A DNA stretch of 42,955 nt from Octopus bimaculoides (lineage: Eukaryota): contig NC_068984.1 in assembly GCF_001194135.2 (NCBI RefSeq), positions 94,384,780 to 94,427,734 on the forward strand. Direction: 5' to 3'. Positions 1,972 to 41,636 of this stretch are shown here, one piece after another; the stretch's first letter is position 1; every line of letters begins with the position of its first letter. Below the pieces are notes generated by a model. That model was not told where the DNA came from. It did not search any database and saw nothing but the letters and a program-made list of their open reading frames with translations. Made by a program: the position numbers and the translations under genes.

Positions 1972-1996
1972 CACATTGTGCCCAGATTGGCTAATT
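1972..1996 (+). repeat. Left TIR of the RAG1-like element (CACATTGTGCCCAGATTGGCTAATT)
   Basis: Matches the reverse complement of 5481-5502 with a 2-nt indel and a few substitutions. The first 7 nt differ from CACAGTG at one position. Confidence 0.8.
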
Positions 1997-2561
1997 CAAG
2001 AAAAAAATCATATCCCATGTGGTTAAAAATGATTATCTGGTAGGGGCTTTGAAGGGTTCCTCATTTACTCCATTCCCCCCCCCCCTTCTTTTGAGGATTT
2101 GATTTGACTTGCACTTACATCACCCAGCAATGATTTTGTACTCTCTGAAAATTAATTTCCAAAACCAAAATTGAAATTCAGCACTTTGTTGTGTCCATTT
2201 GTCCAACTGCCCAACTTCCTGTTTCAGTTTCACTTTCTTTGTACAGTCTGTCATGTTGCTGATACAGCACTTTTTCCTCACTTGTTTGGTACTTCACTTT
2301 CATATTGGTCATTCTCTTAAAGCTGTTATCAATTGCTGTTGTGTGCCTGCATTCTGTTTGCTTGTTTTTGAAGTATGTGTGCCTCAACAGTGATACTGAA
2401 TCATTACAAGATATTTGGGCCAATTGCCATGGGTTGTTGCAGTTTCATCTGTTTGGGTTGTTCTTTTGACTGGTTTGCATTTGTTTTCTCTAATTTGAGC
2501 TCAGGGTGACAAAGCCAATTTTATGCTGGTGTATTTTCTTTAGGTAGAAAATCAATTCAAA

Positions 2562-4586
2562 ATGAAGTGGAATAACAAAGAAGCATTAGAACTATTTCTT
2601 GTTTATACCAAGCACTTGCCTAAAAACAAAAAAGAAGGGCAAGAAATGTGATGAAGCGGCAAACATGTTCATAGAGAATCTTCCAAAGCTACCCCCAGAC
2701 CATAGGTGCATCAGCATGAAATTCTTGAGAATGTTGGATTCAAAACCTGGTAACAGGAGTTCTCAAAATGATGTGTCTAAATGGAAGATTTTGGTTTTCT
2801 TTGAGCATGTTCAAGCATCAGATTAAACAAAGAAACCAAGAACCAGACCAAGTGTAACCCTTGGTGATGCACCTTGTTTGAAAAAAACAAGGTCGATTTT
2901 GAAAGATGTGATTTGTTGGGTAGAACAATTTACTGAGGAACAGAATGTAACAAAAAAAGTTGCTCTGCAAACAGTAGTCGATGAATGCAATTGGACTTGG
3001 CATTCCTCTGTTAAGTCAACAAAATGCTCAATTCCTGTTGACAATGCAGTAGCATTAATATATAATGTTAATCTTTCAATGCATCAATATCAAATGATTA
3101 GGACATTGTGTCTCCTGCATGGTGTGGTATTCCTGACCAGAAACGAAGTAGATTGCAAAAAAAAGAAGTTTCATACTACTATGTTATCATACTACTACAG
3201 TTATCAATTGAAATCATTGGCGACATAACTAAGTTAATCGATGAAACAGCTGCATCATTGATTAAATTGAGTGAAACTAAACCAAATCATGAAGAAGGCA
3301 GTTACCACTTAATAAGAAAGTTTGGTGTGGATAGATCAGGATCTCACCAGGAGTTGATCAACACTTCTTTTGCAACAGAAGAAACTGCATATCTTGATCC
3401 AACAAAGAGTAATTCTTTTGTGTTGTCCTGTAACTGTCTCCTTCAGTTGTGCTACAACGACACTGTTCTTTAGACAAACCCAGTGTCAAACAGCACCAGT
3501 TTTGCATGCCCTGTGTCACTTACCAGATGTGTTGAAGAATGAGATGTTCTTGCTGTTGAACTTGAACCATCTTTTGAAGTTATAAAGGATGTCTATCAGT
3601 CAAATATTCTTCTTGGTGACAAAACTATCACTGTACATTGCAAAACAGAGTGCTCAATAGTTGATGGTAAAATGGTCTCCCTACTTCAAGTGGGGCATTC
3701 TGTCATCTGTGTCATACATTGTGAGCTACTGCGAACAACATTGGAGTGAAATCTGAAGGTTATGGTATTACCAAGGACTATGCTTTTTGCAATACAGCAT
3801 GGGAGAAGCTGTCAGCTGGGGACATTTTCTATTTGAGTAGATAGACACAAGGACAATGTCATGAGAACATCATCAAAGCTGATCTTTTTTGTTTTTCTGT
3901 TCTTCACTTTAAGTTGCGATCATTGGATTTTGCACAGCAAATTCTCTACCACCTTGTTAGCAGTCAGAAGATCTGGAGTGAGACAGCAAACCTTAATGTG
4001 ATGTAATTTGTAGGTCGAGCCAAAAAATAATGCATTGATGATATCCATTCCAGTACTGGAATCTTAGTGGATTCACCATGTCATTCAGGGGCGGGGCACC
4101 AATACTGGTCCCCTGGCTGATTGGTTCTTAATGCAACAAAGAAGGTGTAAGTTGATGTGTTGAAGTCACTGGGCATAGAGCTGATGATGCACATGAAGAA
4201 CGCATTCCTTAACAAGAAGGGGCAACCTTGGGTGATGTTCATTCCATCTTTCCACTAAATGTGTGTGCATAGCTGGCAGCTCTTTGAGTTAATTGAGTTA
4301 ATCAATTGCTAAATGGAGTGAGAGTCCAGTGGAAAGTTGGAATAAACATGTAAGGTCATTTCCAAGTGGTCCTTCTGCAAGATGTTGCCAGCTTTCAATC
4401 AAGGATAACATCCATGATATCTTCAGAAGAATGTCCATCATGTCACATCCAGCAATTGCTTCAAAACATCCCAGCCCAAGTTGTTCTGTTTGTGGTGAAG
4501 TTGGTCACACAGTTCGTTCTTCAAAACATAAGAAGGTGTCTGCTTTGTCAGAAGAACAATCAAGAATCGAATCACTATATTGCTAA
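2562..4586 (+). pseudogene. RAG1-core-like DDE transposase pseudogene
   Basis: Segments in order: RPSVTLGDAPCLKKTRSILKDVICWVEQF (NBD-like); AVALIYNVNLSMHQYQMIR (cf. RAG1 LAIRVNTFLSCSQY); KFGVD (D1, 3330-3332); L*TNPVSNSTSFACPV (cf. Transib WxNPxPSSTxYCRP); SIVDGKM (D2, 3663-3665); AFCHLC (3701-3712); SVLH (3905); TNTGPLAD; PSFH*MCVH (4253, 4268); WSESPVESWNK (E, 4332-4334); CSVCGEVGH (4482-4508). There are several stops and frameshifts, and the start at ATG 2562 is tentative. Confidence 0.88.
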
Positions 4587-5480
4587 CTGGCCCATGTTAT
4601 GCATATTTATTGTTTGGCATTGCTGTTTCAATATTTGTTGTGAATAATAAGTGATCAGTTTTCACAATTTAGAGCAAATGATTCTGATTTTCTTTGTGAA
4701 TCATGGGGGGGGGGGGNNNNNNNNNNNNNNNNNNNNNNNNNNNNNNNNNNNNNNNNNNNNNNNNNNNNNNNNNNNNNNNNNNNNNNNNNNNNNNNNNNNN
4801 NNNNNNNNNNNNNNNNNNNNNNNNNNNNNNNNNNNNNNNNNNNNNNNNNNNNNNNNNNNNNNNNNNNNNNNNNNNNNNNNNNNNNNNNNNNNNNNNNNNN
4901 NNNNNNNNNNNNNNNNNNNNNNNNNNNNNNNNNNNNNNNNNNNNNNNNNNNNNNNNNNNNNNNNNNNNNNNNNNNNNNNNNNNNNNNNNNNNNNNNNNNN
5001 NNNNNNNNNNNNNNNNNNNNNNNNNNNNNNNNNNNNNNNNNNNNNNNNNNNNNNNNNNNNNNNNNNTTAATATGTCAAAATTTGTCATTTAAAAAAAAAA
5101 TTATCAAGTTTGAGGGGGTTTTACCAAAAATTTGGATATTTCTATCAAAAACTTAAATTTTTCATGCATCTCCAATTTTCTCAAATTTATGTTGGCCTAT
5201 GCACTCTAGGCTGTAGCTTGACTGAAAAACAATAAAAAATGCTCCTAAATAAGTTCAAACAGAGGTTTAAAATCTTTTTTGTAAAAGAAAATATGTTCAA
5301 TCTTATTGATACTAAAAAAAAAAAACCGTAAATTTTGTTAAATTGGCCCAACTTTAAAGAGCTATAAAAATTGAACCATACATTATTTTAAACTTAGGTT
5401 TTTTGTTTTATAATTTCCTGAGTTTAGAGAACCAGAAAATTTGCAGTTTAAACATCTGGGGGAAACTTCAAAAGATGATA

Positions 5481-5502
5481 AATTCCTACTCTGGGCAGTG
5501 TG
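5481..5502 (-). repeat. Right TIR of the RAG1-like element (reverse complement CACACTGCCCAGAGTAGGAATT)
   Basis: Inverted match to 1972-1996, followed directly by TAGAG at 5503-5507. Confidence 0.8.
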
Positions 5503-6160
5503 TAGAGTCTCACTGAGAATGTTTATCTAACAAAGAGTTGATGCTGTTAGAACAAGAACTAAGAATACAAATAAGAATATAGAAACTCCACCAACTTCAC
5601 TTAAATTGACAAAAAGAATATTGTTAAAGGGTTGGCATTTATAGACAAAGGTCTGCAAGTTTTTGATGATAACACCCCTTAATCATGAACATAACAAAAA
5701 TTACAATGAGCTCAGTTGCTACACTGAGCTGTACAAAGGGATGATACACTATAAACATCAAACAACTTTGGATAAGTTCTTCATACCTGAAGTAGACACT
5801 GATGATGATGATGATGAGACAGAAGACAGTGTCTCTCATCATCCCAGTAATGCTCATTCCACCACTACCCCTCTCGCAGTAGTCAATATATTTTGTGGTA
5901 AGAACACACCCTGTTACAATATTACAATTCTTATTTATTCCTTTATGTATTAGTTTTCAAATGTTCCTATGCATACATGTACTGTGTATGTTTAGAAATT
6001 ATTAATTTCATTCATAAAAGTGGTCATCTAGCCCCCCCCCCCCAAAAAAAAATTGTTAGAACACATCTCACTTAATACATGAAAATCAATGGGAAAAGTA
6101 ATTTCAGATTATAGTAAGATATTTAGGAACAAGTTACTTCCATAAAATGAGGAATAGCTG
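5503..6160 (+). mobile_element. Tigger/pogo-like relic, 3' part
   Basis: Reads (L)ESH*ECLSNKELMLLEQE, continuing DVTELL from before 1972, and later HQTTLDKFF, typical of the Tigger C-terminus. The right end is approximate. Confidence 0.8.
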
Positions 6161-6210
6161 TAGTTTCAGAGTTCATAATCATGAACATAAGGGAGTCTTT
6201 GGTAACACAT

Positions 6211-6436
6211 CTAAGTTACGGGGACGTAAACACAGACACACAAGCACACACACACACATATATATACATATATACGAAGGGCTTCTTCCAGTTTCCGTCT
6301 ACCAAATCCACTCACAAGGCGTTGGTTGGCCCGAGGCTATAGTAGAAGACACATGCCCAAAGTGCCACACACAGTGGGACTGAACCTGGAACCATGTGGT
6401 TGGTAAGCAAGCTACTTACGACACAGCCACTCCTGC
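6211..6436 (-). mobile_element. tRNA-derived SINE (octopus-type), head and core, partial tail
   Basis: The minus strand begins GCAGGAGTGGCTGTGTCG (A box) with a GGTTCAGTCCC B box. It is homologous to 32817-33244. Confidence 0.85.
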
Positions 6437-7220
6437 ACCTATTGTAATGAAAATCTTCATTTAATTTGGTAACAAATATATTCAAGGAAATGAACAATTT
6501 TCATACAAAAACTAAATAAATTAAAAACTAATTTCGTTACACTGCCTTAATGTAAGGTTAAATCTCTTTCTCATTGAGTACACTCTTCTTTTAATGATAT
6601 ATATCAAGAAAAAAAAAACAAATAAACAAAACTTAAAAACCACAAGTTTACAACACTTGTTACCACATTGTGCTTTTTTTGTTATGGATAATGATTCAAC
6701 TTCATGGACAAAAGAACCATATCAGGAGGAAAGCTGAAGAAGATATTTTGCTTTTGGCATGAGCTTGTAGATATTGTAAGAACATATGCTTTATCAGTGG
6801 ATGTTGTGTCAGCTGTGAAAAATATTCCATATAAAGTGTTGCAATACATTTTTGCACAGAAGAATACGCTATAACAATTCACACTGAAGAACCTTCTACA
6901 TCTGCTGTTTCTTTCTCAGTAAGAGATGTAGATGATTCTCTTGCAGTAGAAATAGCTCTCAAAAAAAAAAAAAAAGAAAAAACTTAGAAGAGATTACTGT
7001 TCTTCTTTCCCCCATTAGCCTGTTGTCCTTCAATGTTGAATAAACAGCCTGCCAAACACAAACAAAAAAAAATTGTGATTTTTCAACTGTTGATTTATAA
7101 TTTTTCCTCTAAATCTTTCATTTGCTTATTTGGATACACAAATATCAGGTTGATTATTTCAATTGTTCACATATCATATAGACTGAAATTTACCATGAGT
7201 TTTAATTAGATTCTTTTTCT

Positions 7221-7385
7221 TTTATTCTTTTACTTGTTTCAGTAATTTGACTGCGACCATGCTAGACCACCACCTTGAAGAGTTTTAATTGAATAAATCA
7301 AACCCAGGACTTATTTCTTAAACCTAGTACTTATTCTATCAGTCTCTTTTGCCAAACTGCTAAGTTACAGGGTCAAACACAAACA
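7221..7385 (-). mobile_element. SINE 3' tail fragment
   Basis: Homologous to the tail of the full copy (32817-32970), next to a CA/TA microsatellite and an N gap. Confidence 0.75.
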
Positions 7386-7629
7386 CACTCACACACAGAC
7401 ATATATATACATATATATATATNNNNNNNNNNNNNNNNNNNNNNNNNNNNNNNNNNNNNNNNNNNNNNNNNNNNNNNNNNNNNNNNNNNNNNNNNNNNNN
7501 NNNNNNNNNNNNNNNNNNNNNNNNNNNNNNNNNNNNNNNNNNNNNNNNNNNNNNNNNNNNNNNNNNNATATGTATGAAGTAAAAGCAGCTCTAGTGTAAT
7601 AAATATTATTAAATACATATACTTATGTA

Positions 7630-11599: not shown

Positions 11600-14100
11600 A
11601 AAAACTCTCTTTCCAAGCATCCCTGTCATCTCAACATCTCCCCAGCCAAATTCTCGGCCCTTTAATCTCTCCGATGCTGCACTGACATCATTATAAAACC
11701 AGCCGACAAGGGTGGAGCCGTGGTGGTATGGTGTGCGGACCTCTACAAGGTCGAAGCTCTCCGCCAACTTCAAGACACCTCCTTCTACTGCCCTCTGCCC
11801 TATGACCCAATGCCCACCTACCAACAGACTGTGTCCTCCACTATCCATGACCTCATCTCCTCCCCCGTCTGCCCCCACCGCCTCCAACCTCATTGTCTGC
11901 ACCCCCACCATTTACTTCCTCCCCAAAATCCACAAACCTAACAACTCTGGCCGCCTCACTGAGCTTATCTCCAAATATCTTGACTGTATCCTTGCCCCCC
12001 CTAGTGGCTTCTCTCTCTTCTCAGATCCATGACATCAACCACGTGCTTCGTTTGTTCAACTCTTTCTCCTTCCCTCCTGGCCCCTCTAAACTTCTCTTCA
12101 CTATCGACATCCAGAGCCTTTACACAGTGATCCCTCACCACGAGGGGCTGTGTGCACTCAAACATTTCCTTGGCCTCCGACCCAACCTCCAGCCTGACAC
12201 CTCTACACTCGTTCATCTGGCCGAACTTGTCCTCTCACTTAATTGCTTCTTGTTCGCGGGCAATTTCTACCAGCAGCTCTCAAGAGTGGCCATGGGAATG
12301 AGAATGGGCCCCAACTATGCGAACCTATTCATTTGGCTATGTTGAGGCCCAAATATTCTCAAGTTTCACTGGTTCCACTCCCAAATTATATGGCCGTTAT
12401 ATTGATGACTGTATCGGTGCAACCTCACTCTCCCGCGAACATCTAGACTCCTTTCTCTCTTTTGTCAAATCGTTCCATCCTGCCCTCCACTTCTCCTGCA
12501 CTATCTCTGACACCTCTGTCTCCTTTCTTGACATTTCGGTCAGCATTAATCACTCCACTCTTACCACCTCCATCCACTACAAACACACAGACTCACACTC
12601 ATACCTCAACTTCTCCTCCTCCCACCCTAAACACACCAAGCTTTCCATCCCCTATTCCCAATTCCTCCATCTACGCAGGCTCTGTAGTGACGACCATGAC
12701 TTTGAGACTCAGTCTCAACTCATGGCTCACCATTTCATCCTAGTTGGATATCCCCCTCACCACTATCCACACTGCCCTTGCCAGAGCATGTCCCCGAACC
12801 CGCCCTGCCATCTCCCACCTCCCTTTTCCCCTCACCTACCACCCCACCATCCTACCTCTCCAATGCACCATTCTCTGAGCTTTCCAGCGTCTCCAGTCCA
12901 ACCCCTCCATTTCACACATCTTCCCTAACCGACCCCTCCCCTCCTTCAAACAAGCCCACAACCTATGAGACCTCTTAGTCCACAGCTTCTTCCCCAATCC
13001 AACCCAACCTCCCAACCTGCCTCGTTTCCCTGCTCTCACCCACAATGCCGCACTTGCCCATACCTTTCCAACACCACCCTCCTCACAGGCATCCATCATT
13101 GACCCTATCACATCACTGACTCCTTGACCTGCACTTCTACCAATATCATCTATTGCATCTCCTGTTCTCTCTGCCATTCTCTGTACATCAGACAAACGGG
13201 ACACCGCTTGGCTAACCAGTTCGTGGAACACCTTAGAGACATCCGCCTCGGCAATGACACCCCAGTCACCGGTCACTCTTTGCAACACCTGTCCGTGTTC
13301 GGATTGTCCTTGCACAAGGGCCATCTGGACTCCCGTTTGCACCATGAACAGGGATTAATCTTCTGTCTTCGCTCCTTTGCACCACATGGGCTCAACTCTC
13401 CTCCTTTTGCCTCTCTCCCCCTCCCTCCTACTTCCTCCCACCTATCTCTCCTCTCTTGCTCCAACTCCTACTTCTCTTCACACCTACCCCTACTCTCTTT
13501 CGCTCTTCTCTCATACTCACCTTCCCCTTCCTCGTCAGCCCTCCCTCATGAGCCCACTCCACCCCTACACATTCCTACCCCACCTTCCTCATCCCATCCC
13601 TTACACCCTCTCCTACATACCCTACCTCTAACCCCACCCACTGCCTACCCACATACCCCCACCCCCACCCGTGCATTCCCCACCTCCCAACATCACGCAC
13701 ACACCAGCACTGACCAATCCCCATCCCCACATCTTCACACCTACATATACACACACGCACACGTCAAGATCACCATCCCTCTTTCACACGCACATACATA
13801 CTCGCTCACACACGCGTGCACCTTCGTTTTGGGATCACTATTACTTTGTTATCTTCCCTTCTTCTTAGCTCTCCTGTATGACCCTTCTGTTCGGCATTCG
13901 CCATGATAGATCGCTAACCACTACACACATTTCTTTTCTCTGCTTGTTTCTCTCTTTGTTTCTTTCTGTGTTCCTTTCTGTTGAACAGCATAGGCTCGAA
14001 ACGTTAAAGACTTTTCCAATTCCCAAACGTTATACTAATATATCTGTGTGTTTTCTACACCACCTGTCTTTGTCCTTTGTTTTTCTTGTGAATTCTCCCT
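11600..14100 (+). mobile_element. Penelope-like retroelement (Neptune-type), 5'-truncated, RT plus GIY-YIG
   Basis: Motifs IIKPADKGGAVVVW, YFLPKIHKP, LFTIDIQSLYT, GMRMGPNYANLF, YGRYIDD, FLDI and SSSHPKH; a Cys linker PCSHPQCRTC; endonuclease NIIYCISCSLCHSLYIRQT. It is frameshifted and has a pyrimidine-rich 3' region. Confidence 0.88.
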
Positions 14101-16443: not shown

Positions 16444-17319
16444 ATGCAATGTCCTCCGTTTCGCTTATTGGATTTGCTTGAAATCAGCCGTGACCAGGAC
16501 CATCTAATTGAATGGCTGAAAACATATGGACTTTTAGCAGAAGCTCATGTCTGTGACTGTGGCCACAATTGTTCGTTTGTGAAATTTTCGTGACTTCAAG
16601 ATGGGTATAGTTGGAAGTGCACTGCTTGACAGTGGCGAAAACGCTTTTCCATTAGAAAAGGATCGTTTTTCCAAAATAGTAATTTATCTTTAAGAACAAT
16701 ACTGCTCTTTCTGTATTGGTGGTCCATTGATGAACCCTTGCAGAAAATTATGCATGAGCTAAAAATTGCGAATTGGTCCACTGTAGTGGATTGGGCCAAT
16801 TTCTGCCGAGATATTCTGGCACAACACCTAATTGATAATCCATTAATGATTGGCGGCCCTGATGTCGTGGTTGCCATTGATGAGTCTAAATTTATGCACC
16901 GAAAGTATCGGCGGGGTGCGCACTATGACGGCACTTGGGTGTTGGGTGGGATTCAATTGGACAATCCCACCAATTGCTTCTTATCTATATGCTCGGATAA
17001 TAGCCGGTCCATGGATTCCTTGGAATCCATTATCCGGCAACATGTCCGTCCAGGGAGCATCATTTTCACAGATGAATGGGCACGTTATCGTAATTTGCAG
17101 CAGCAAGGGTTCCTGCATTTAACGGTAAACCACTCAGTTTCATTTGTTGATGAAGCCACAGGTGTACACACAAATCATGTAGATGGAATGTGGGCGCATG
17201 CTAAGTGCAAATATCGGCAACTTTATGATACTTCAACCGAGTTGTTTTCCACGTATTTAATAGAATTCATGTGGCGGAAGAGGTACTCCACTAGACAATT
17301 TGAGCAATACACATTTTAA
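16444..17319 (+). pseudogene. Merlin DDE transposase, full length, two in-frame TGA stops
   Basis: MQCPPFRLLDL...CDCGH...[26 protein letters not shown]...[10 protein letters not shown]...WVLGGI...[11 protein letters not shown]...HLTVNHS...[12 protein letters not shown] 16444 is in frame with the 16738 ORF. Confidence 0.92.
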
Positions 17320-30329: not shown

Positions 30330-31059
30330 AGTTTAATTACTATTTTATGACTCAAGTGTGGATGTGATATATCTCAACTTTGTAAAAGCCTTTGATAAAG
30401 TTGACCATGGTATGATATGTCACAAATTGCATGATCTCGGCATAGTTGGAAAACTTGGAGAGTGGCTACATGACTTTCTAAGAGATAGATGTGGCAGTGA
30501 TGGCCAATGGAGCCACCTCAAAGGAAACACCAATAGCAAGTGGTGTTCCACATGGCATTGTCTTAGGGCCACTGCTATTCATATTGGCCCTTTCAGATAT
30601 GCCCTCAGCCCCTCAGATAGCCACCCTCATTAGCTATACAGATGACACAAAAGTTTATCAGACAATTCAAAACCCAGGAAACATTGCAAATCTGCAACAG
30701 GAGTTGGATGCATTATACAGTTGGGCTGAGGACAACAATATGCTGTTTAATGTAAGAAAATTCCAAGTCCTGTGCTACCAGTACACAAAGCTGAATGACA
30801 TGCATACAGGATACACTGGCCCAAGAGGAATTGCAATCACTGAATCAAAATCAGTGCGTGACCTGGGCATTGACATGAGTAATGACATGAGGTTAGATGA
30901 TGGGGGTGGTGTTTCCAAAGGGCTGGCATGGGCAACCTCATCACCTCTGCCGATCAAACTCCCAACCCATGCTCTCCCATCGCGACACTGATACTGCAGA
31001 ACTGGGTTGGGTGTGAAAACCAACTTTAAAGTATAAATATAGATGTTTTTGAATCAGCA

Positions 31060-35869: not shown

Positions 35870-37550
35870 TTGTTACCTTTGTTTACCTACCAATGCAAGT
35901 GTTCGATCCAGTGACCTGTGATTACTATTGATTTAGTAAACAGAGTGGAAGACTCCTTTGAAAGCAAAGGAGTTGATGTGGAGCTCTTAGGTCCATAAGC
36001 TCGCTTCATAAGATGGTAAAACATTTTGCTGTCATTTGCATCAGCAGCAGCCTGAACATCACAAGCAAGATCCTCTCACTAAGTGTTCTGCATCTTCCTG
36101 AGAGATCGCTGCAGTAGTGATTTTACACTGCTATAGTGGGCAAGTGCTAGACTTCGCTGCACAATAGACAGTTCTCTGTGTAGCAATACATTGTGGGCAT
36201 GGCACTTTACCATCCATAGTCGCTGAACTTCAGCATCATTTTCATCAAACCAGTCTCTGTGTCTGGCAGTAGCATATCCCAGTATTTCAGCTGCACATTG
36301 AAGAACCTGGTCTTGAAAAATCTTCCCATGCTGCAGTATTTTCAATGCTGGACAAGCGAGTCTGAAGCTCTTTCCTAACCACAACATCATATACCTTGTG
36401 GACATTTAGATGGCAAGGAATGCTGACTGGTCCTCTTCTCTCTTTCACTCTAATCATCATTTGGAACTTTGCTTGCACCAGACTATGGTCCGTCCAGCAT
36501 TCCGATCCATGAAAGGACTTGACATTACAAATGTCATAGATGTCGCACTTGCAGATGATAACATAATTCAGCAAGTGCCAAACTTCAGACTTTGGATGCA
36601 TCCACATTGTTGTGTGATTACCTTTGTGCATAAAATGAGTGCTTGCGATGTAAAGTTCATGTTCTTCGCAAAGCTCCAGTAGCATGAGACCGTTGCTATT
36701 CATTTTCCCTACTCAAAAACGTCCTACAGATTTCCATGTTTGCCAGTCTGTTCCAACCCTGGCATTAAAATTCCCCAGTAGAATGACTTTATCAGAATTG
36801 GGGATTTTTCTAAGTATGGCTCTCAGCTGGGTATAAAAGATTGTTTTATCTTCATAACAGCTAGTCAAAGTAGGTGCATAGGCACTTATTAGAGTAGCAA
36901 ACTGCCTACCTTTCAAGCGCAACCGTAGAGTCATTATACATTCATTTATAGGAACAGGGAGCTCTTCCAGCTTCTTAAGGATATCAGATTGAACTGTTAA
37001 ACCAACACCAGCTTTTCTGCACTCCTCCTTCTGCCTTCCCTTCCAAAAAAAGGTGTATCCACCTCCTACTTCCTCAGGATGACCATCACCTGCTATACGA
37101 GTCTCTGAGAGTGCAGCTATATCAATGTTATAACGGTTCAGCTCACGACCAACAAGTGCAGTGCATCTTTCAGGCCTACAATCACTCTTGTTGCCCAACA
37201 GAGTGCGCACATTCCAACAAGAAATGTTTAAGTTCAGTCCAGATTTTATAAATAAAAGACTGTTTTTTGAGCACAGCGTGGACATCCATCATTCGCGCTA
37301 AACTGACCAGATACAGAAAGACAGGCAATTTTTGGTTCACCTTTTCTAAAACCTCCCCGGCCTCCGGGTGAGCAGTGCCCTCTCCAAATGGAGCTGCTCA
37401 GACACCCATGCAGCATCCAAATCCTACCGCTGTCTTGGGCAACATGAGGATGACTATATATCTAGCATGGGCCGCCTACGTGCAGGTCGCTGACTACATG
37501 CGTCCAACCTGTCAGGTCTGCATGCTTCACCACCTTCCCATTGCCGCTTC
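35870..37550 (-). mobile_element. RTE-clade LINE 5' part (APE endonuclease)
   Basis: LNISCWNVRTLL...RPERCTALVGRELNRYNIDIAALSETR...GYTFFWKG...LISAYAPT...ILLGNFNARVG, then NSNGLMLLELC...WMHP...SECWTDH and RHRDWFDENDAEV. Confidence 0.9.
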
Positions 37551-38049
37551 CGAATAAAAAAAATACTAAAGACATATAAATATATACTAAAAATGAAGAA
37601 AATATATATCAAAATAAGATATATATGTACTAAAAATAAGATATATATATCGGGGTAAAAAAAAATGCACATATCAAGCAGAGGTCGGCAATGCCTGTGC
37701 AGAGTTTCAGGTCCAATGAGGATTGCACAACACCTCATAGATCCTATCCACTTTTTTGACATTATCCAGAGACAAGCCAGAGCAAGATGTCTGGTGCCAA
37801 TATGAGTCGCAGGTTCAGAGATGTAGAAGTGCCGTGATCTCTAGCACAAACCAAAGATCCCCAAAATGTTCAATGCCATTCCCTGCATATCTGGTTTTAT
37901 ATCAGAGTGACCTTCTTCAACAGAAGCTGAAGGGTGCCTCACTCCCAATGGTCTTTCAGCACGCCGGACACCATCCTGGAATTTCTGCGTACCCGTGCTA
38001 TTGCTAGATAGCCATTGAGCCTGCACTAGGTCCATCCGAGCTTTCAGAT

Positions 38050-38080
<31 letters not shown>

Positions 38081-38243
38081 AACACACACTCACATATATA
38101 TATATATGCATATATGTATATATATACATATATATATATATATNNNNNNNNNNNNNNNNNNNNNNNNNNNNNNNNNNNNNNNNNNNNNNNNNNNNNNNNN
38201 NNNNNNNNNNNNNNNNNNNNNNNNNNNNNNNNNNNNNNNNNNN

Positions 38244-41200
38244 AGCTTGTCCGGATCGGGGAGACATGTTATACCAGAAAACTGCTTCCAGCGGCGAAAT
38301 GTGCCCTCTTTCCGCTATGGCCTTGATTGTCCAATGGTGTCTCTCTATGATTCCGTTACCGCTCAGCCTATATGCTACTCTGAACAAGCGACGCACTTTC
38401 CACCGGTCTAGCATATCCCTCAACACTTCCAAACGAAACGCCGACCCGATGTCCATTAGCAGTTCTTCTATGGGACCCTTCTCTAAAAATATCCCGTTCA
38501 AAATGTGCGCAATCTCGTCAGCAATGCCCATCTTAACTCCTTCCAAATGGCTATCCGGCCTGCAGTTGACCATGGAGAGATACATTCCCTGATGGCAGTG
38601 CGTCACATCCATGGCTAGTCTCTCCCAGTTGTGCTCCACTGAAAGGTTTCCTTGCTCATGCCCACATGGAGTAGGGTCAATGGACTGGAACCTTTCACAG
38701 CTCCCGACCACTTTCAGGATGCTTCTCCTAGTGACGTCAGCATCAATCAACTTCGCGAGATACAGAGTCCTATCCACCCCCAAGTGATGCATAGCATGTA
38801 GTCTCTTNNNNNNNNNNNNNNNNNNNNNNNNNNNNNNNNNNNNNNNNNNNNNNNNNNNNNNNNNNNNNNNNNNNNNNNNNNNNNNNNNNNNNNNNNNNNN
38901 NNNNNNNNNNNNNNNNNNNNNNNNNNNNNNNNNNNNNNNNNNNNCCGCGGCACCTTTTGTCTGAACTCTCCTCTCACTGGTGATCACCGATCCTACCCAG
39001 GCGAGCACAGTGGCCAAATCCGTCTGGATTTCGATTGAGCGCAGCCCCCATTTCAGGGGTAGTTCACCCCATTCAGCACTGCGTCTAACTTGGCGACATT
39101 GATGTGGTTAAAGTCGTCTGCTTTCCGAAGCCAGGCCAAGTCCTCCACCTCAGCACCTTCGATCTCCAACACAACCCCTATCACTATACTGCTAGCATCA
39201 CACCAAACGGTCCCACATTCCGTCTTGGGCACATACCAGTTCCCCTGACCGGGTCTTCCGCTCTCGTCTTCTCTAGGATTTCCCGCATCATTGCCACCGT
39301 CCCCTCTCCCATCTTGTCAATCCAACTCTCCCCCTCTGCTTGTCTCTTGGCATGCTGTGCACAGCCATCCAGCGATCGGGTAGTGACCTACCAACTTCTC
39401 ACACACCGAGAACAGCTCTCTCCTGCTGACACTGGAACTCAGCTTTGGGATTTTATTTCCTCTCCAGAACACCAACTCAACTGATCTATCTCTTCATAGC
39501 TTCAGCCCCAGTGCAGCTTCCCCCGCCATCGACTCCAGTGGCTTCGCAATCAGCCCGAACTTCTCCAGATGTCTCACTACCTCAGTGGCTGGCACTACAG
39601 TCTCGTCCACCAAAATGTCGTCTATGTAAGAACTGGTGGCCTTTCTTATCTTGTCCTCTTTCCCTAGGATGGACTTGAGCACCATCACCATGATCTTCGG
39701 AGCAGAATTCAGTCTGAAACCCAGCCTGGTTAAACAGTACATCCGGGCCTTGTACCGCACCAGCTGATATCGCCACAGTTTGTCACTCACATGGAGCTGC
39801 AAATATGCCGACTTCAAGTCGACATTCATCACTGCCTTGGTCGACTGTCTCCACACACGTAACGTCTCGCCTCCCGTGTGGAACGATATATGGTCATTCA
39901 GTTCTCTAAAGTCCAGCACCGGTCTGACTTTTCCCTTCGTCGACTGCATCACCGTCATCAGAGGTAGTACTCCGCTCACCACCTCCTCCTTCCACGGGAT
40001 AAGGACTCCTTCCTTGATCCATCTCTCTACCTCGTCTTTGAACTTGACCCTGGCGTGACCTTTCAGGGTACACTGGTAGCACCTCACCCTGTTCTTCAGC
40101 ATTGGGAACTCGTCTTTCCCTTGCCACTCTATCATCCACCGCCGACCATTGAACACCACAAGAAAATCCTTGTCCTCAACGGTGCAAGCAGTGCAGTCCC
40201 TCATGGAGCCCTGCTCTCTCTGGCGAACCTGACTCATAGCACACAACGCTCCCATGCTTCTGAACGTGACCTCATCTCCTCCAATCCTAACACCACCGAG
40301 GCAGTTGATGGCATCCATTCCCATCACCACATCAATCCCGTCTATCACATGTTCGATCACAATTACCTGCAGCCTTAGCATCGCGCCTCACACCGCTATC
40401 TGTACATTGCTGCTGCCCTTGCATCGGATTTCACCACCGTTGACCGCCTGGACGCTACTTGCCCCATTCCATTTCTTCGTCACCCTTGGAGTCATGAGGG
40501 TGGTCGTGCAACCCGTATCCACAAGGGCCTTGAATGTCTTCCCCTCGGCCTCGACATTAATTATGGGCAGCATCTCCACAAGTGCCTCTACTTTGCGGGG
40601 AAAGTTCAAGAGGCAGCAACTTCCCCACGGTCGTTTCCCTGGTCGCAATCACGGGCGATGTGCCCTGTCTGCCTGCATCGATAGCAGACGGGCCCTGGTT
40701 GCATACACTTCCTTGCCATGTGCGACCCCTGACATTTAAAACACCGGCCTGAGAATGGCCGCTGTTGCTGCATGGTAAGCTTCTTTGTGTCTTTCTCCGG
40801 CCGTCATCCGTAATTATGCGCCTCCGTTACCGCCTTCCGTCCAGTGTTTCATGTCAACATGCGAGCTTGAGCTACAAGTTCGCTCAGCGCCATCTTTTTG
40901 CCCCCGGAAAATTGTTGCAGTCGAATCCTCACGTCGTCAGGGAACCCACTTACGAACTGCAGTCGCGTTGCTCTGTCCAGGCCTTCTCCCGTAAACCCAG
41001 TCAGCGTGGTCAGCCTATGCACCTTCGTCGCGTATTCATCCACTTGCTCTCCCATCCATCTAATCGTTCCCAGCTTAACAAAGGCTCTATACTCACACTC
41101 AGTGTAAGCCTCTCTCAGACGTCGCTCAATCTTCTCCTTGCTCAGTCGTTCTTCTTCGTCCATCTTGAGATACAGAGTTAACGTGCTCCCTTCCAAATAT

Positions 41201-41636
41201 AGTGCCATAAGGCTCTCCACGTCGCTAATGCCTTGCAATCTCACCACAAGCCTGATTTTACGCATCCAGGCCACTACATCACCATTAAAGGGCCTGATAA
41301 CGTTGCTGGCGATCCTAATTTTAGCTGCCATCGTGGTGATGTCTTATGTGGAGCGTCAAAATAGCTTGTAGTGAATGCGGGAGATTAGAAGTAAGACACC
41401 TACTTTCTCTTCGCTGGCGCAGAAATGTCGGGTGGTAACGCATCCTTCCAGAAACGCTAAAAATAGCAGCTGCTTTCCCTCACCTTGACGAAGCAGATAC
41501 GTCCTGCACTCACGGCTCCCCCGACCGAAAAGGGCGCAATCTTCCTCGACCAGTGTGCACGTCACTTGTGCGCCCTTCCTCTTCCGGTCAGCTCCCCAGT
41601 TCCAGTCAGTTCCCCAGCCACTGACGTCATCCCATA
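38244..41636 (-). mobile_element. Ty3/Gypsy LTR retrotransposon, decayed, 3' LTR missing
   Basis: Gag at 41331-40849; CCHC knuckle CYRCRQTGHIARDC; protease ALVDTGC; RT RPVLDFRELN, DLKSAYLQ and YIDD (39628-39617); integrase GNGIIERHH. Confidence 0.92.
41367..41636 (-). repeat. Probable 5' LTR of the Gypsy element
   Basis: GC-rich block upstream of gag, bounded on the + strand by TGTAG at 41367 and CCCATA at 41636 (a decayed TG...CA). No canonical PBS was recognised. Confidence 0.55.

Follow-up and report, generated by a model that had tools for sequence, protein, structure and literature searches.

A decayed Octopus bimaculoides Transib copy, probably of Subgroup I, and a clade-wide variant of its zinc-knuckle-like tail

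Introduction

Transib transposons split into two subgroups (Tao et al. 2022, PMC9435367). Members of Subgroup I keep the alpha11-alpha12 region, end in a C-terminal tail called CTT1 (formerly CTT*) and have asymmetric terminal inverted repeats (TIRs), whereas Subgroup II, which includes HzTransib of Helicoverpa zea, has lost alpha11-12 and carries a different tail, CTT2 (PMC9435367). An equivalent of the RAG1 nonamer-binding domain (NBD) with a conserved GRP motif has been reported in both subgroups (PMC9435367). Here we analyze a stretch of 42,955 nucleotides of Octopus bimaculoides DNA (RefSeq assembly GCF_001194135.2, contig NC_068984.1, positions 94,384,780 to 94,427,734 of the forward strand), hereafter the window, which encodes the remains of a transposase. 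A preliminary description of this locus had noticed a tail with a Cx2Cx3GH motif and an NBD-like N-terminal segment, and had read the two as hallmarks of the RAG1-like (RAG1L) proteins of invertebrates. We find it very likely that the window holds one old, inactivated copy of an autonomous Subgroup I Transib that has no RAG2-like partner and belongs to a clade whose tail is probably of a CCHH type.

The RAG1L proteins to which the locus must be compared are known from RAG-like (RAGL) transposons. BbeRAG1L of the amphioxus element ProtoRAG (PDB 6b40) requires RAG2L and has a long N-terminal zinc-finger region; its Cx2Cx3GHx4C tail, CTT*, clamps the TR2 block of the TIR and is redundant with a GRPR/K NBD (PMC10629977, PMC7204232), a motif that its own NBD* lacks (PMC10629977). 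The first RAG1L protein described with both a GRP-NBD and a CCGHC tail is PflRAG1L-A of a hemichordate (Martin et al. 2023, PMC10629977). By its description it resembles the family studied here in its GRPR/K NBD, its CCGHC tail and its asymmetric TIRs with an A-rich nonamer-like block, and differs in belonging to the RAG1/RAG1L lineage and in having a RAG2L-A partner, whereas the present family appears to be a Transib without one. RAG1 of jawed vertebrates likewise depends on RAG2, and ends in an acidic tail without a knuckle. That GRP-NBD and CCGHC tail occur in Transibs is already known (PMC9435367, PMC10629977), and both are common among the relatives analyzed below. What appears new is a clade-wide shift from the last knuckle Cys to a His placed a few residues further on, together with a set of intact relatives whose ends resemble recombination signal sequences (RSSs) and are asymmetric.

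Results

A full-length but inactivated transposase gene

Residues 1-714 of P0001, the closest intact relative, were matched by tblastn over three frames at 2562-4586 on the forward strand. From this match and the decayed reading frame we annotate a Transib transposase pseudogene that is full-length yet dead. It is the single copy of the transposase within the 43-kb window (tblastn with P0001 as query), which is draft eukaryotic DNA with eight gaps of N and a G+C content of ~35%. The coding sequence is interrupted by eight in-frame stops (2824, 3471, 3540, 3722, 3842, 4004, 4028 and 4256) and six frame changes (near 2643, 3202, 3696, 4091, 4155 and 4301), and ~36 amino acids have been deleted near 4130-4157. 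The copy is unable to make protein. Both strings to which the preliminary description had pointed are present: the NBD-like TRPSVTLGDAPCLKKTRSILKDVICWVEQF is encoded at 2842-2931 and the tail string CSVCGEVGHTVRSS at 4482-4523, in a frame that ends with the stop codon at 4584-4586. The two lie in different frames, yet they are parts of one decayed coding sequence. Nor are they chance motifs, as the tail Cys pair, the GH and the R of GRP are invariant in 16 intact relatives.

Despite the decay, all three catalytic motifs (D, D and E) and the two halves of the zinc site can still be recognized. The first catalytic Asp lies in FGVDRSGSH at 3321-3347 (+; family consensus FGxDGSGSH), which aligns with the GFDGA region of HzTransib; D253, G254, S255, G256 and H258 of this motif are invariant in the alignment of the 16 relatives. 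The second Asp motif, SIVDGKM, and the ZnC2 pair, FCHLC, occupy 3654-3712 (+) and align with HzTransib and RAG1. In the window copy a frameshift falls between them; D367, K369, M370, C382 and C385 are invariant in the family. The ZnH2 pair, FH*MCVH, which the stop at 4256 splits, and the catalytic Glu motif, ESWNKH, lie at 4247-4349 (+); H604, H609, E631, W633 and N634 are invariant in the family alignment. The Glu motif aligns with ESGNK of RAG1 (the E962 region) and with HzTransib.

The family is nearer to Transibs than to RAG1L proteins

Direct searches with the stitched translation of the pseudogene against PDB sequences and Pfam returned no match at E<=1, so the placement of the copy rests on a profile of its family. 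The stitched translation has 30 relatives in a large protein collection, with E-values from 2e-240 downward; the intact ones are 632-761 residues long (about 700) and share 29-55% identity. A profile built from 16 full-length intact relatives matched HzTransib best among PDB sequences (E=3e-42, 148 bits). RAG1 chains followed at 2.7e-13 to 1.9e-9 (about 50 bits; 42-52 when amphioxus BbRAG1L is included), BbRAG1L itself (6b40) reaching 3.3e-10 and 42 bits. The AlphaFold model of P0001 (pLDDT 79.7) gave the same order: HzTransib was the best fold match (Foldseek E 6.6e-22, TM 0.80), with RAG1 and BbRAGL next. Jawed-vertebrate RAG1 shares the DDE core fold at Foldseek E-values of about 1e-20 to 1e-14 and BbeRAG1L the RAG1-like core fold at 1.7e-16; by sequence BbeRAG1L is much further from the family than HzTransib is (3.3e-10). 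Pfam scans of intact members yielded sub-threshold RAG1 and zf-CCHC matches only, and several members carry a precomputed match to PF26100, RAG1_RNase_H.

When 1.84 billion representatives were searched exhaustively with the profile, 4,004 relatives passed E<=1e-3, of which 479 also passed E<=1e-30. Among the matches listed, all 150 score at least 179 bits, above the 148 of HzTransib. A scan of JGI metagenomes yielded one locus only. No RING or zinc-finger Pfam family was found in the N-terminal region of the eight proteins scanned. By these comparisons the family is a Transib and not a RAG1L: it lies nearer to Transibs than to RAG1 or RAG1L, has no N-terminal zinc-finger region and, as described below, no RAG2L partner. 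RAG1L identity was a candidate that we rejected on the profile scores, the family being far nearer to HzTransib and MleTransib_3931.

The family has the features of Subgroup I

MleTransib_3931 of Mnemiopsis leidyi is a published Subgroup I element, whose sequence we took from the supplement of PMC9435367. It matches the family profile at 193.5 bits, unbroken over profile positions 238-559, and the alignment also spans the tail to position 710, knuckle included. After ZnC2 the profile has 47 positions (398-445) over which MleTransib_3931 is again unbroken, against 13 residues in HzTransib, and the window copy encodes this stretch at 3713-3900. The comparison suggests that the region equivalent to RAG1 alpha11-alpha12 has been kept in the family. 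With this region, a CTT1 tail and asymmetric TIRs, the family carries all three features of Subgroup I.

Accordingly the family and MleTransib_3931 are alike in being single-gene Transibs with the stretch between ZnC2 and ZnH2, with asymmetric TIRs and with a CTT1 zinc-knuckle tail followed by an ending of the form S-x-V..EE...S.F/Y. They differ in that the window clade lacks the last knuckle Cys and conserves a His 2-3 residues past its position, in that MleTransib_3931 has RRP, as printed, where the family has GRP, and in their N-terminal regions, which barely align (2.4 bits). HzTransib (PDB 6pqn, 6pqx), the nearest solved structure by sequence and by fold, has the same DDE core and zinc site. 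Its chain, however, begins at the DDBD region and has no counterpart of family residues 1-157, has about 34 residues fewer after ZnC2, and aligns only as far as chain residue 465 of 497, just short of the knuckle, in keeping with its tail being of the CTT2 type of Tao et al.

A clade-wide variant of the zinc-knuckle tail

The tail of the window copy contains a zinc-knuckle-like motif, CSVCGEVGHTVRSSKH, at 4482-4529 (+), with the pattern C-x2-C-x3-GH-x4-S-x2-H, a clade variant of the CTT1/CCGHC tail. It is followed by the extreme C-terminus, SALSEEQSRIESLYC, with its stop codon (4539-4586, +), which corresponds to the family motif SVxxxEExxxIxSxY. E107 of the tail alignment is invariant within this ending, the layout recurs in MleTransib_3931 as STVIQEEDALVSSEF, and in the P0001 model it forms a helix (pLDDT 72-91). 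The two tail Cys residues and the GH are invariant both in the 16 intact relatives and in the tail alignment. The preliminary description was right that the tail belongs to the motif family of RAG1L CTT* (CTT1), since the family tail can be aligned with the CTT1 of MleTransib_3931 over its full length, and that a GRP-led unit stands at the position of the RAG1 NBD; in what is to all appearance a Transib protein, these are not RAG1L hallmarks.

We then counted tail types in 176 sequences plus the window copy, 65 of which have a tail with C-x2-C-x3-GH. The canonical Cx2Cx3GHx4C is present in 35 of the 65, in four the last Cys comes one residue earlier, and the remaining 26, the window included, have no Cys at the last position. 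The Cx2Cx3GHx4C tail, being common among Transib relatives, is by this count not diagnostic of RAG1L. The preliminary description had itself named a wide spread of this tail in ordinary Transibs as grounds for giving up its reading, and the count supplies them. All 26 tails without the last Cys have a His 2-3 residues past its position, compared to none of the 35 canonical ones. In a neighbor-joining tree of 53 near-full-length sequences, the tails without this Cys fall into a single clade, made up of 19 proteins and the window copy, whose sister clade carries the full Cx2Cx3GHx4C. Cys at the last position of other copies, for which the preliminary description had suggested looking, is therefore absent from the whole clade of the window and present in the sister clade. 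Within the clade the position is occupied by S, A, I, F, K, V or N, and the state without Cys is maintained across 40-55% sequence divergence.

These data bear on whether the Ser, which the preliminary description had noted where a final Cys would sit, is simply damage. In such an account both the tail Ser and the TRP that replaces GRP would be mere pseudogene decay and the live ancestor would have had a canonical Cx2Cx3GHx4C tail. The window copy is indeed heavily mutated, and its TRP is truly private. The Ser, by contrast, is real and common to the whole clade: all 19 near-full-length intact clade members lack Cys there and have His 2-3 residues later, while the sister clade has Cys. The Ser state was thus inherited and predates the insertion; it is not a lesion of the window copy. 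We regard the decay account as extremely improbable, and for the tail Ser it is ruled out by the clade-wide absence of the last Cys.

Judged from sequence, the window clade most likely has a knuckle of CCHH type, its fourth ligand having shifted. The alternative is that the tail of this clade no longer binds zinc and is a degenerate knuckle, at most a basic DNA-binding peptide, in which the His is conserved for other reasons. The ligand spacing is broken (C-x2-C-x4-H-x6/7-H), AlphaFold models the knuckle with low confidence, and the clade has likewise replaced a second C-terminal Cys, which appears as ..SC[YF] in 7 of the 10 aligned canonical tails. Loss of metal binding would nevertheless make it hard to explain why both Cys residues, the Gly and the first His are invariant across 40-55% identity. 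Moreover, in relatives P0087, P0103, P0137 and P0162 the Cys at the fourth position is itself swapped for His (CxxCxxxxHxxxxH), which indicates that His is tolerated as fourth ligand in the superfamily. A tail without zinc therefore seems unlikely to us, though less so than simple decay, and we retain the CCHH knuckle as the preferred reading.

Profile searches gave a similar picture of the motif. Pfam zf-CCHC scores 10-16 bits on intact members, against a cut-off of 20.8, and its spacing, C-x2-C-x4-H-x4-C, is found in the sister clades and not in the window clade (C-x2-C-x4-H-x4-[S/A/I/F/K/V/N]-x1-2-H). A profile of the tail plus C-terminal domain (CTD) reached the HzTransib residue just before the knuckle, beyond which it made weak generic matches to CCHC knuckles, and it did not retrieve amphioxus RAG1L 6b40.

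At the very end of the protein, 7 of the 10 canonical CCGHC tails aligned finish in ..[SGAH]-C-[YF].., and those of the window clade in ..S-[LMV]-[YF].., so that a second Cys near the C-terminus disappears along with the knuckle Cys. The window copy ends in SLYC (4572-4583) and has a private Cys as its last residue.

A GRP-led segment at the position of the nonamer-binding domain

The putative NBD equivalent spans 2842-3000 (+), as placed by the family consensus and hhalign, and consists of TRP (2842-2850) followed by two predicted helices that run to a conserved Trp. The family consensus is GRPxxxLGDxPCxKxxRxILxxxVxxIExFAxEQ. Its R is invariant and its G is present in at least 90% of the 16 intact relatives, so TRP in the window is a private G-to-T change. 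In some members K/R follows the motif (GGRPKK, PGRPKK, RGRPRK). From GRP to the YNxNLS motif of the DDBD there are 73 residues in the family, compared to 83 in mouse RAG1. P0023, P0025 and P0026 each combine a GRP-NBD and a CCGHC tail in one protein.

The resemblance to the NBD, judged by eye in the preliminary description, proved modest and non-random when the family segment was aligned to a RAG1 NBD alignment by comparison of profile hidden Markov models (HMMs). hhalign aligned 36 columns with P=1.4e-4 and a probability of 52%. Its score of 25.4 was reached by none of 300 column shuffles of the NBD alignment (9.3 +/- 1.9, maximum 16.9). The latter holds ten vertebrate NBDs that are 81-88% identical to the mouse sequence, and this shallowness limits the sensitivity of the test. 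In the HMM comparison the GGRPR at the head of the NBD of jawed-vertebrate RAG1 aligns with the family GRP and the helix that follows it; of the NBD, only the first 36 columns align. With the full family profile, HMMER produced a weak collinear alignment with RAG1 GGRPRQHL...FA, in which single stretches have E-values of 3-28 and are not significant alone. Foldseek aligned the full P0001 model with NBD-containing RAG1 chains over about 60-70 more columns than with chains that lack the NBD, a comparison of lengths only. When residues 1-155 were modeled in isolation (pLDDT 88), a disordered GRP linker preceded two long helices. An NBD equivalent is thus plausible and agrees with PMC9435367, the similarity being modest and confined to the GRP motif and the first helix; neither profile nor fold supports it when the segment is taken in isolation.

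Upstream of GRP, residues 1-82 of P0001-P0014 form a conserved four-helix domain (window ~2562-2810; pLDDT about 85-96). It had no significant match among PDB folds, the best being to POU-type helix-turn-helix proteins, and this region barely aligns with MleTransib_3931.

Asymmetric ends and complete relatives without a second gene

The 5' TIR of the window element lies at 1972-2009 (+), the only place in the window that matches the terminus pattern CACWNTGTGCCCAG exactly. It begins with the heptamer CACATTG (1972-1978), which is followed by a conserved block, TGCCCAGA (1979-1986), and, 21 nucleotides past the heptamer, by an A-rich nonamer-like block, GAAAAAAAT, at 2000-2008, the arrangement of a long-type 5' end. 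The end is close to CACATTGCGCCCAGAATGGC, the 5' end at L006, the locus of the closest intact relative. CACATTG is found there as well and is therefore a trait of this sub-branch rather than decay.

Three relatives could be delimited as complete elements: L001 (9031-13147; termini CACTGTGTGCCCAG, target duplication CATCT), L009 (2032-6154; L001-type termini, GCCCC), which comes from the same assembly as L001 (ERZ25066843), and L004 (2018-5973; termini CACAGTGTGCCCAGA, TAATG). All have perfect 5-bp target duplications and termini of CACTGTG or CACAGTG plus TGCCCAG; the CACAGTG of L004 is the consensus heptamer of RSSs. TGCCCAG is shared with the 5' end in the window and is conserved among elements whose transposases have only 43-55% identity. 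The two ends of each complete element have in common a terminal block of 14-15 nucleotides and a second block of 12 (GGAAACAATTAA in L001 and L009, GTGAGAAAAAAT in L004). At the 5' end this second block lies farther from the heptamer than it does at the 3' end, by 9 bp in L001 and L009 and by 10 bp in L004, making the TIRs asymmetric. The spacers to the A-rich core are about 12 and 21-22 nucleotides, and the offset of the A-rich block between the ends is roughly one helical turn. For none of L002, L003, L005 and L007 could both termini be recovered.

Each complete element has one transposase gene, and ~1.0-1.1 kb separate its stop codon from the 3' terminus. Besides the transposase, no open frame longer than 115 residues was found in L001, which was read frame by frame, and no second gene is called inside L004 or L009. 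The complete relatives therefore have no RAG2-like gene.

The 3' side of the window copy bears on one further origin, namely that it is the remnant of a RAGL transposon, with a true RAG1L gene whose RAG2L has been lost, has decayed or is hidden in a gap. A CCGHC-type tail and a GRP motif have been discussed for RAG1L-A (PMC10629977), a gap of 350 N (4717-5066) starts 130 bp past the transposase stop codon, and the 3' terminus is missing. Set against these points are the scores of the family profile, 148 bits for HzTransib and 193 for MleTransib_3931 compared to about 50 for RAG1 and 42 for BbRAG1L. The proteins are about 700 residues long and, in the eight scanned with Pfam, show no N-terminal RING or zinc-finger domain; in the complete relatives the ~1.0-1.1 kb past the stop codon holds no frame above 115 residues (L001) or no called second gene (L004, L009). 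Direct inspection found no open frames 3' of the gap, the six frames of 5067-7422 being dense with stops. A RAGL origin is in our judgment highly improbable, and we keep to that of a partner-free Transib.

A run of ten G at 4707-4716 directly precedes the gap and is the likely cause of the break in the assembly; the gap may hide the 3' part of the element.

L001 and L009 come from separate Mb-scale contigs. They agree fully over the outermost 35-45 nucleotides of their termini but not in their target duplications, and eight more cluster members of this element occur on other large contigs. The L001/L009 family looks to have been recently active in its eukaryotic genome.

Discussion

In our preferred reading, the intact transposase of this family is a RAG1-core-like DDE enzyme of about 700 residues that works without a RAG2-like partner. 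It consists of a GRP-led helical segment in place of the RAG1 NBD, a catalytic core that includes the stretch between the zinc-site halves absent from HzTransib, and a zinc-knuckle tail, a homolog of the CTT*/CTT1 found in RAG1L proteins of invertebrates. If HzTransib, RAG and ProtoRAG are a guide, the core would nick and form hairpins at the CAC heptamer. The knuckle tail may clamp the TGCCCAG block just inside the heptamer, as amphioxus CTT* clamps TR2; because TGCCCAG is conserved and stands at the position of ProtoRAG TR2, the tail is its likely reader. The GRP segment, again by analogy, may contact the A-rich nonamer-like block, which is 9-10 bp further in at the 5' end. Integration would produce the 5-bp target duplications seen in the complete relatives. 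In the window clade, the fourth zinc ligand would have changed from the lost Cys to the downstream His, re-wiring the knuckle to CCHH.

Several observations weigh against this reading in whole or in part. The contacts of tail and GRP segment with DNA are drawn from analogous systems. The knuckle is modeled poorly (pLDDT <50 at residues 689-702 of the P0001 model), so it is conservation by itself that points to CCHH coordination, and the contrast between His and Cys is essentially one evolutionary event in one clade rather than 26 independent ones. On the side of the NBD, the hhalign probability is only 52% and the alignment covers the first half of the domain only. An isolated N-terminal profile run against PDB retrieved no RAG1, giving spurious sub-threshold matches only, and the isolated model of residues 1-155 matched no fold significantly and did not match the RAG1 NBD at all, its best match being to POU domains (E 1.2). 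As for the element itself, no 3' terminus was found in the window with 2 mismatches allowed. With neither a 3' terminus nor a target duplication in the window, its boundaries are half-defined. A generic scan for CAC/GTG inverted repeats around the window copy yielded chance-level pairs only.

A more specific proposal is that the window clade represents a RAG2-independent transposase that joins a GRP-type NBD, a CCHH shifted-ligand CTT1 knuckle and RSS-like asymmetric ends, with L001 and L009 as apparently active copies. We put this forward tentatively, as a possibility that we would rather doubt than assume. If the tail and the GRP segment both aid end recognition, such an enzyme would offer a tractable single-protein model of the dual DNA binding proposed for the ancestral RAGL transposon, and the tail, if the shift is true, a case study of a zinc-knuckle ligand that migrated without loss of function. 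The intact and apparently recently mobile relatives with RSS-like asymmetric ends are candidates for biochemistry. The locus itself is most simply a fossil Transib in a repeat-rich region, and neither a RAG1-like gene nor a missing link. Across the database, the family lends modest, independent support to the published idea that the CCGHC tail and the GRP-led NBD are ancestral to Transibs and not RAG1L inventions.

Other elements in the window

The Transib region is bracketed by a 21-nucleotide inverted repeat, CAAATTTTGGGTAAAACCTCC at 13-33 and GGGGGTTTTACCAAAAATTTG at 5114-5134, whose arms are 90% complementary and stand 5 kb apart. A CAC heptamer is absent, and the repeat may either mark the termini of some unrelated element or be due to chance.

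Several stretches resemble retroelements. On the forward strand at 11893-13906, within a G+C-rich part of the window at 12-14 kb, open reading frames (ORFs) that carry a YIDDC reverse-transcriptase motif precede one that reads NIIYCISC...YIRQTGHRL and has the look of a GIY-YIG endonuclease; judged by eye, such a layout recalls a Penelope-like retroelement. The one ORF of this stretch that was scanned, 12317-12928, had no Pfam match. Further pieces, at 30491-30991 (+) and 36713-37285 (-), are a fragment of a reverse transcriptase (PF00078) and an endonuclease of LINE type (PF03372). A run of ORFs at 38004-41331 (-) looks integrase-, reverse-transcriptase- and gag-like by eye, and single-ORF scans of its reverse-transcriptase-like (39494-40381) and gag-like (40849-41331) members gave no Pfam match. 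Finally, an intact ORF of 193 residues at 16738-17319 (+) encodes an ISXO2-like/IS1595 DDE transposase domain (Pfam E=1.4e-19) and by itself points to a probable cephalopod source of the window, as its best relatives are Octopus bimaculoides proteins with 86-91% identity.

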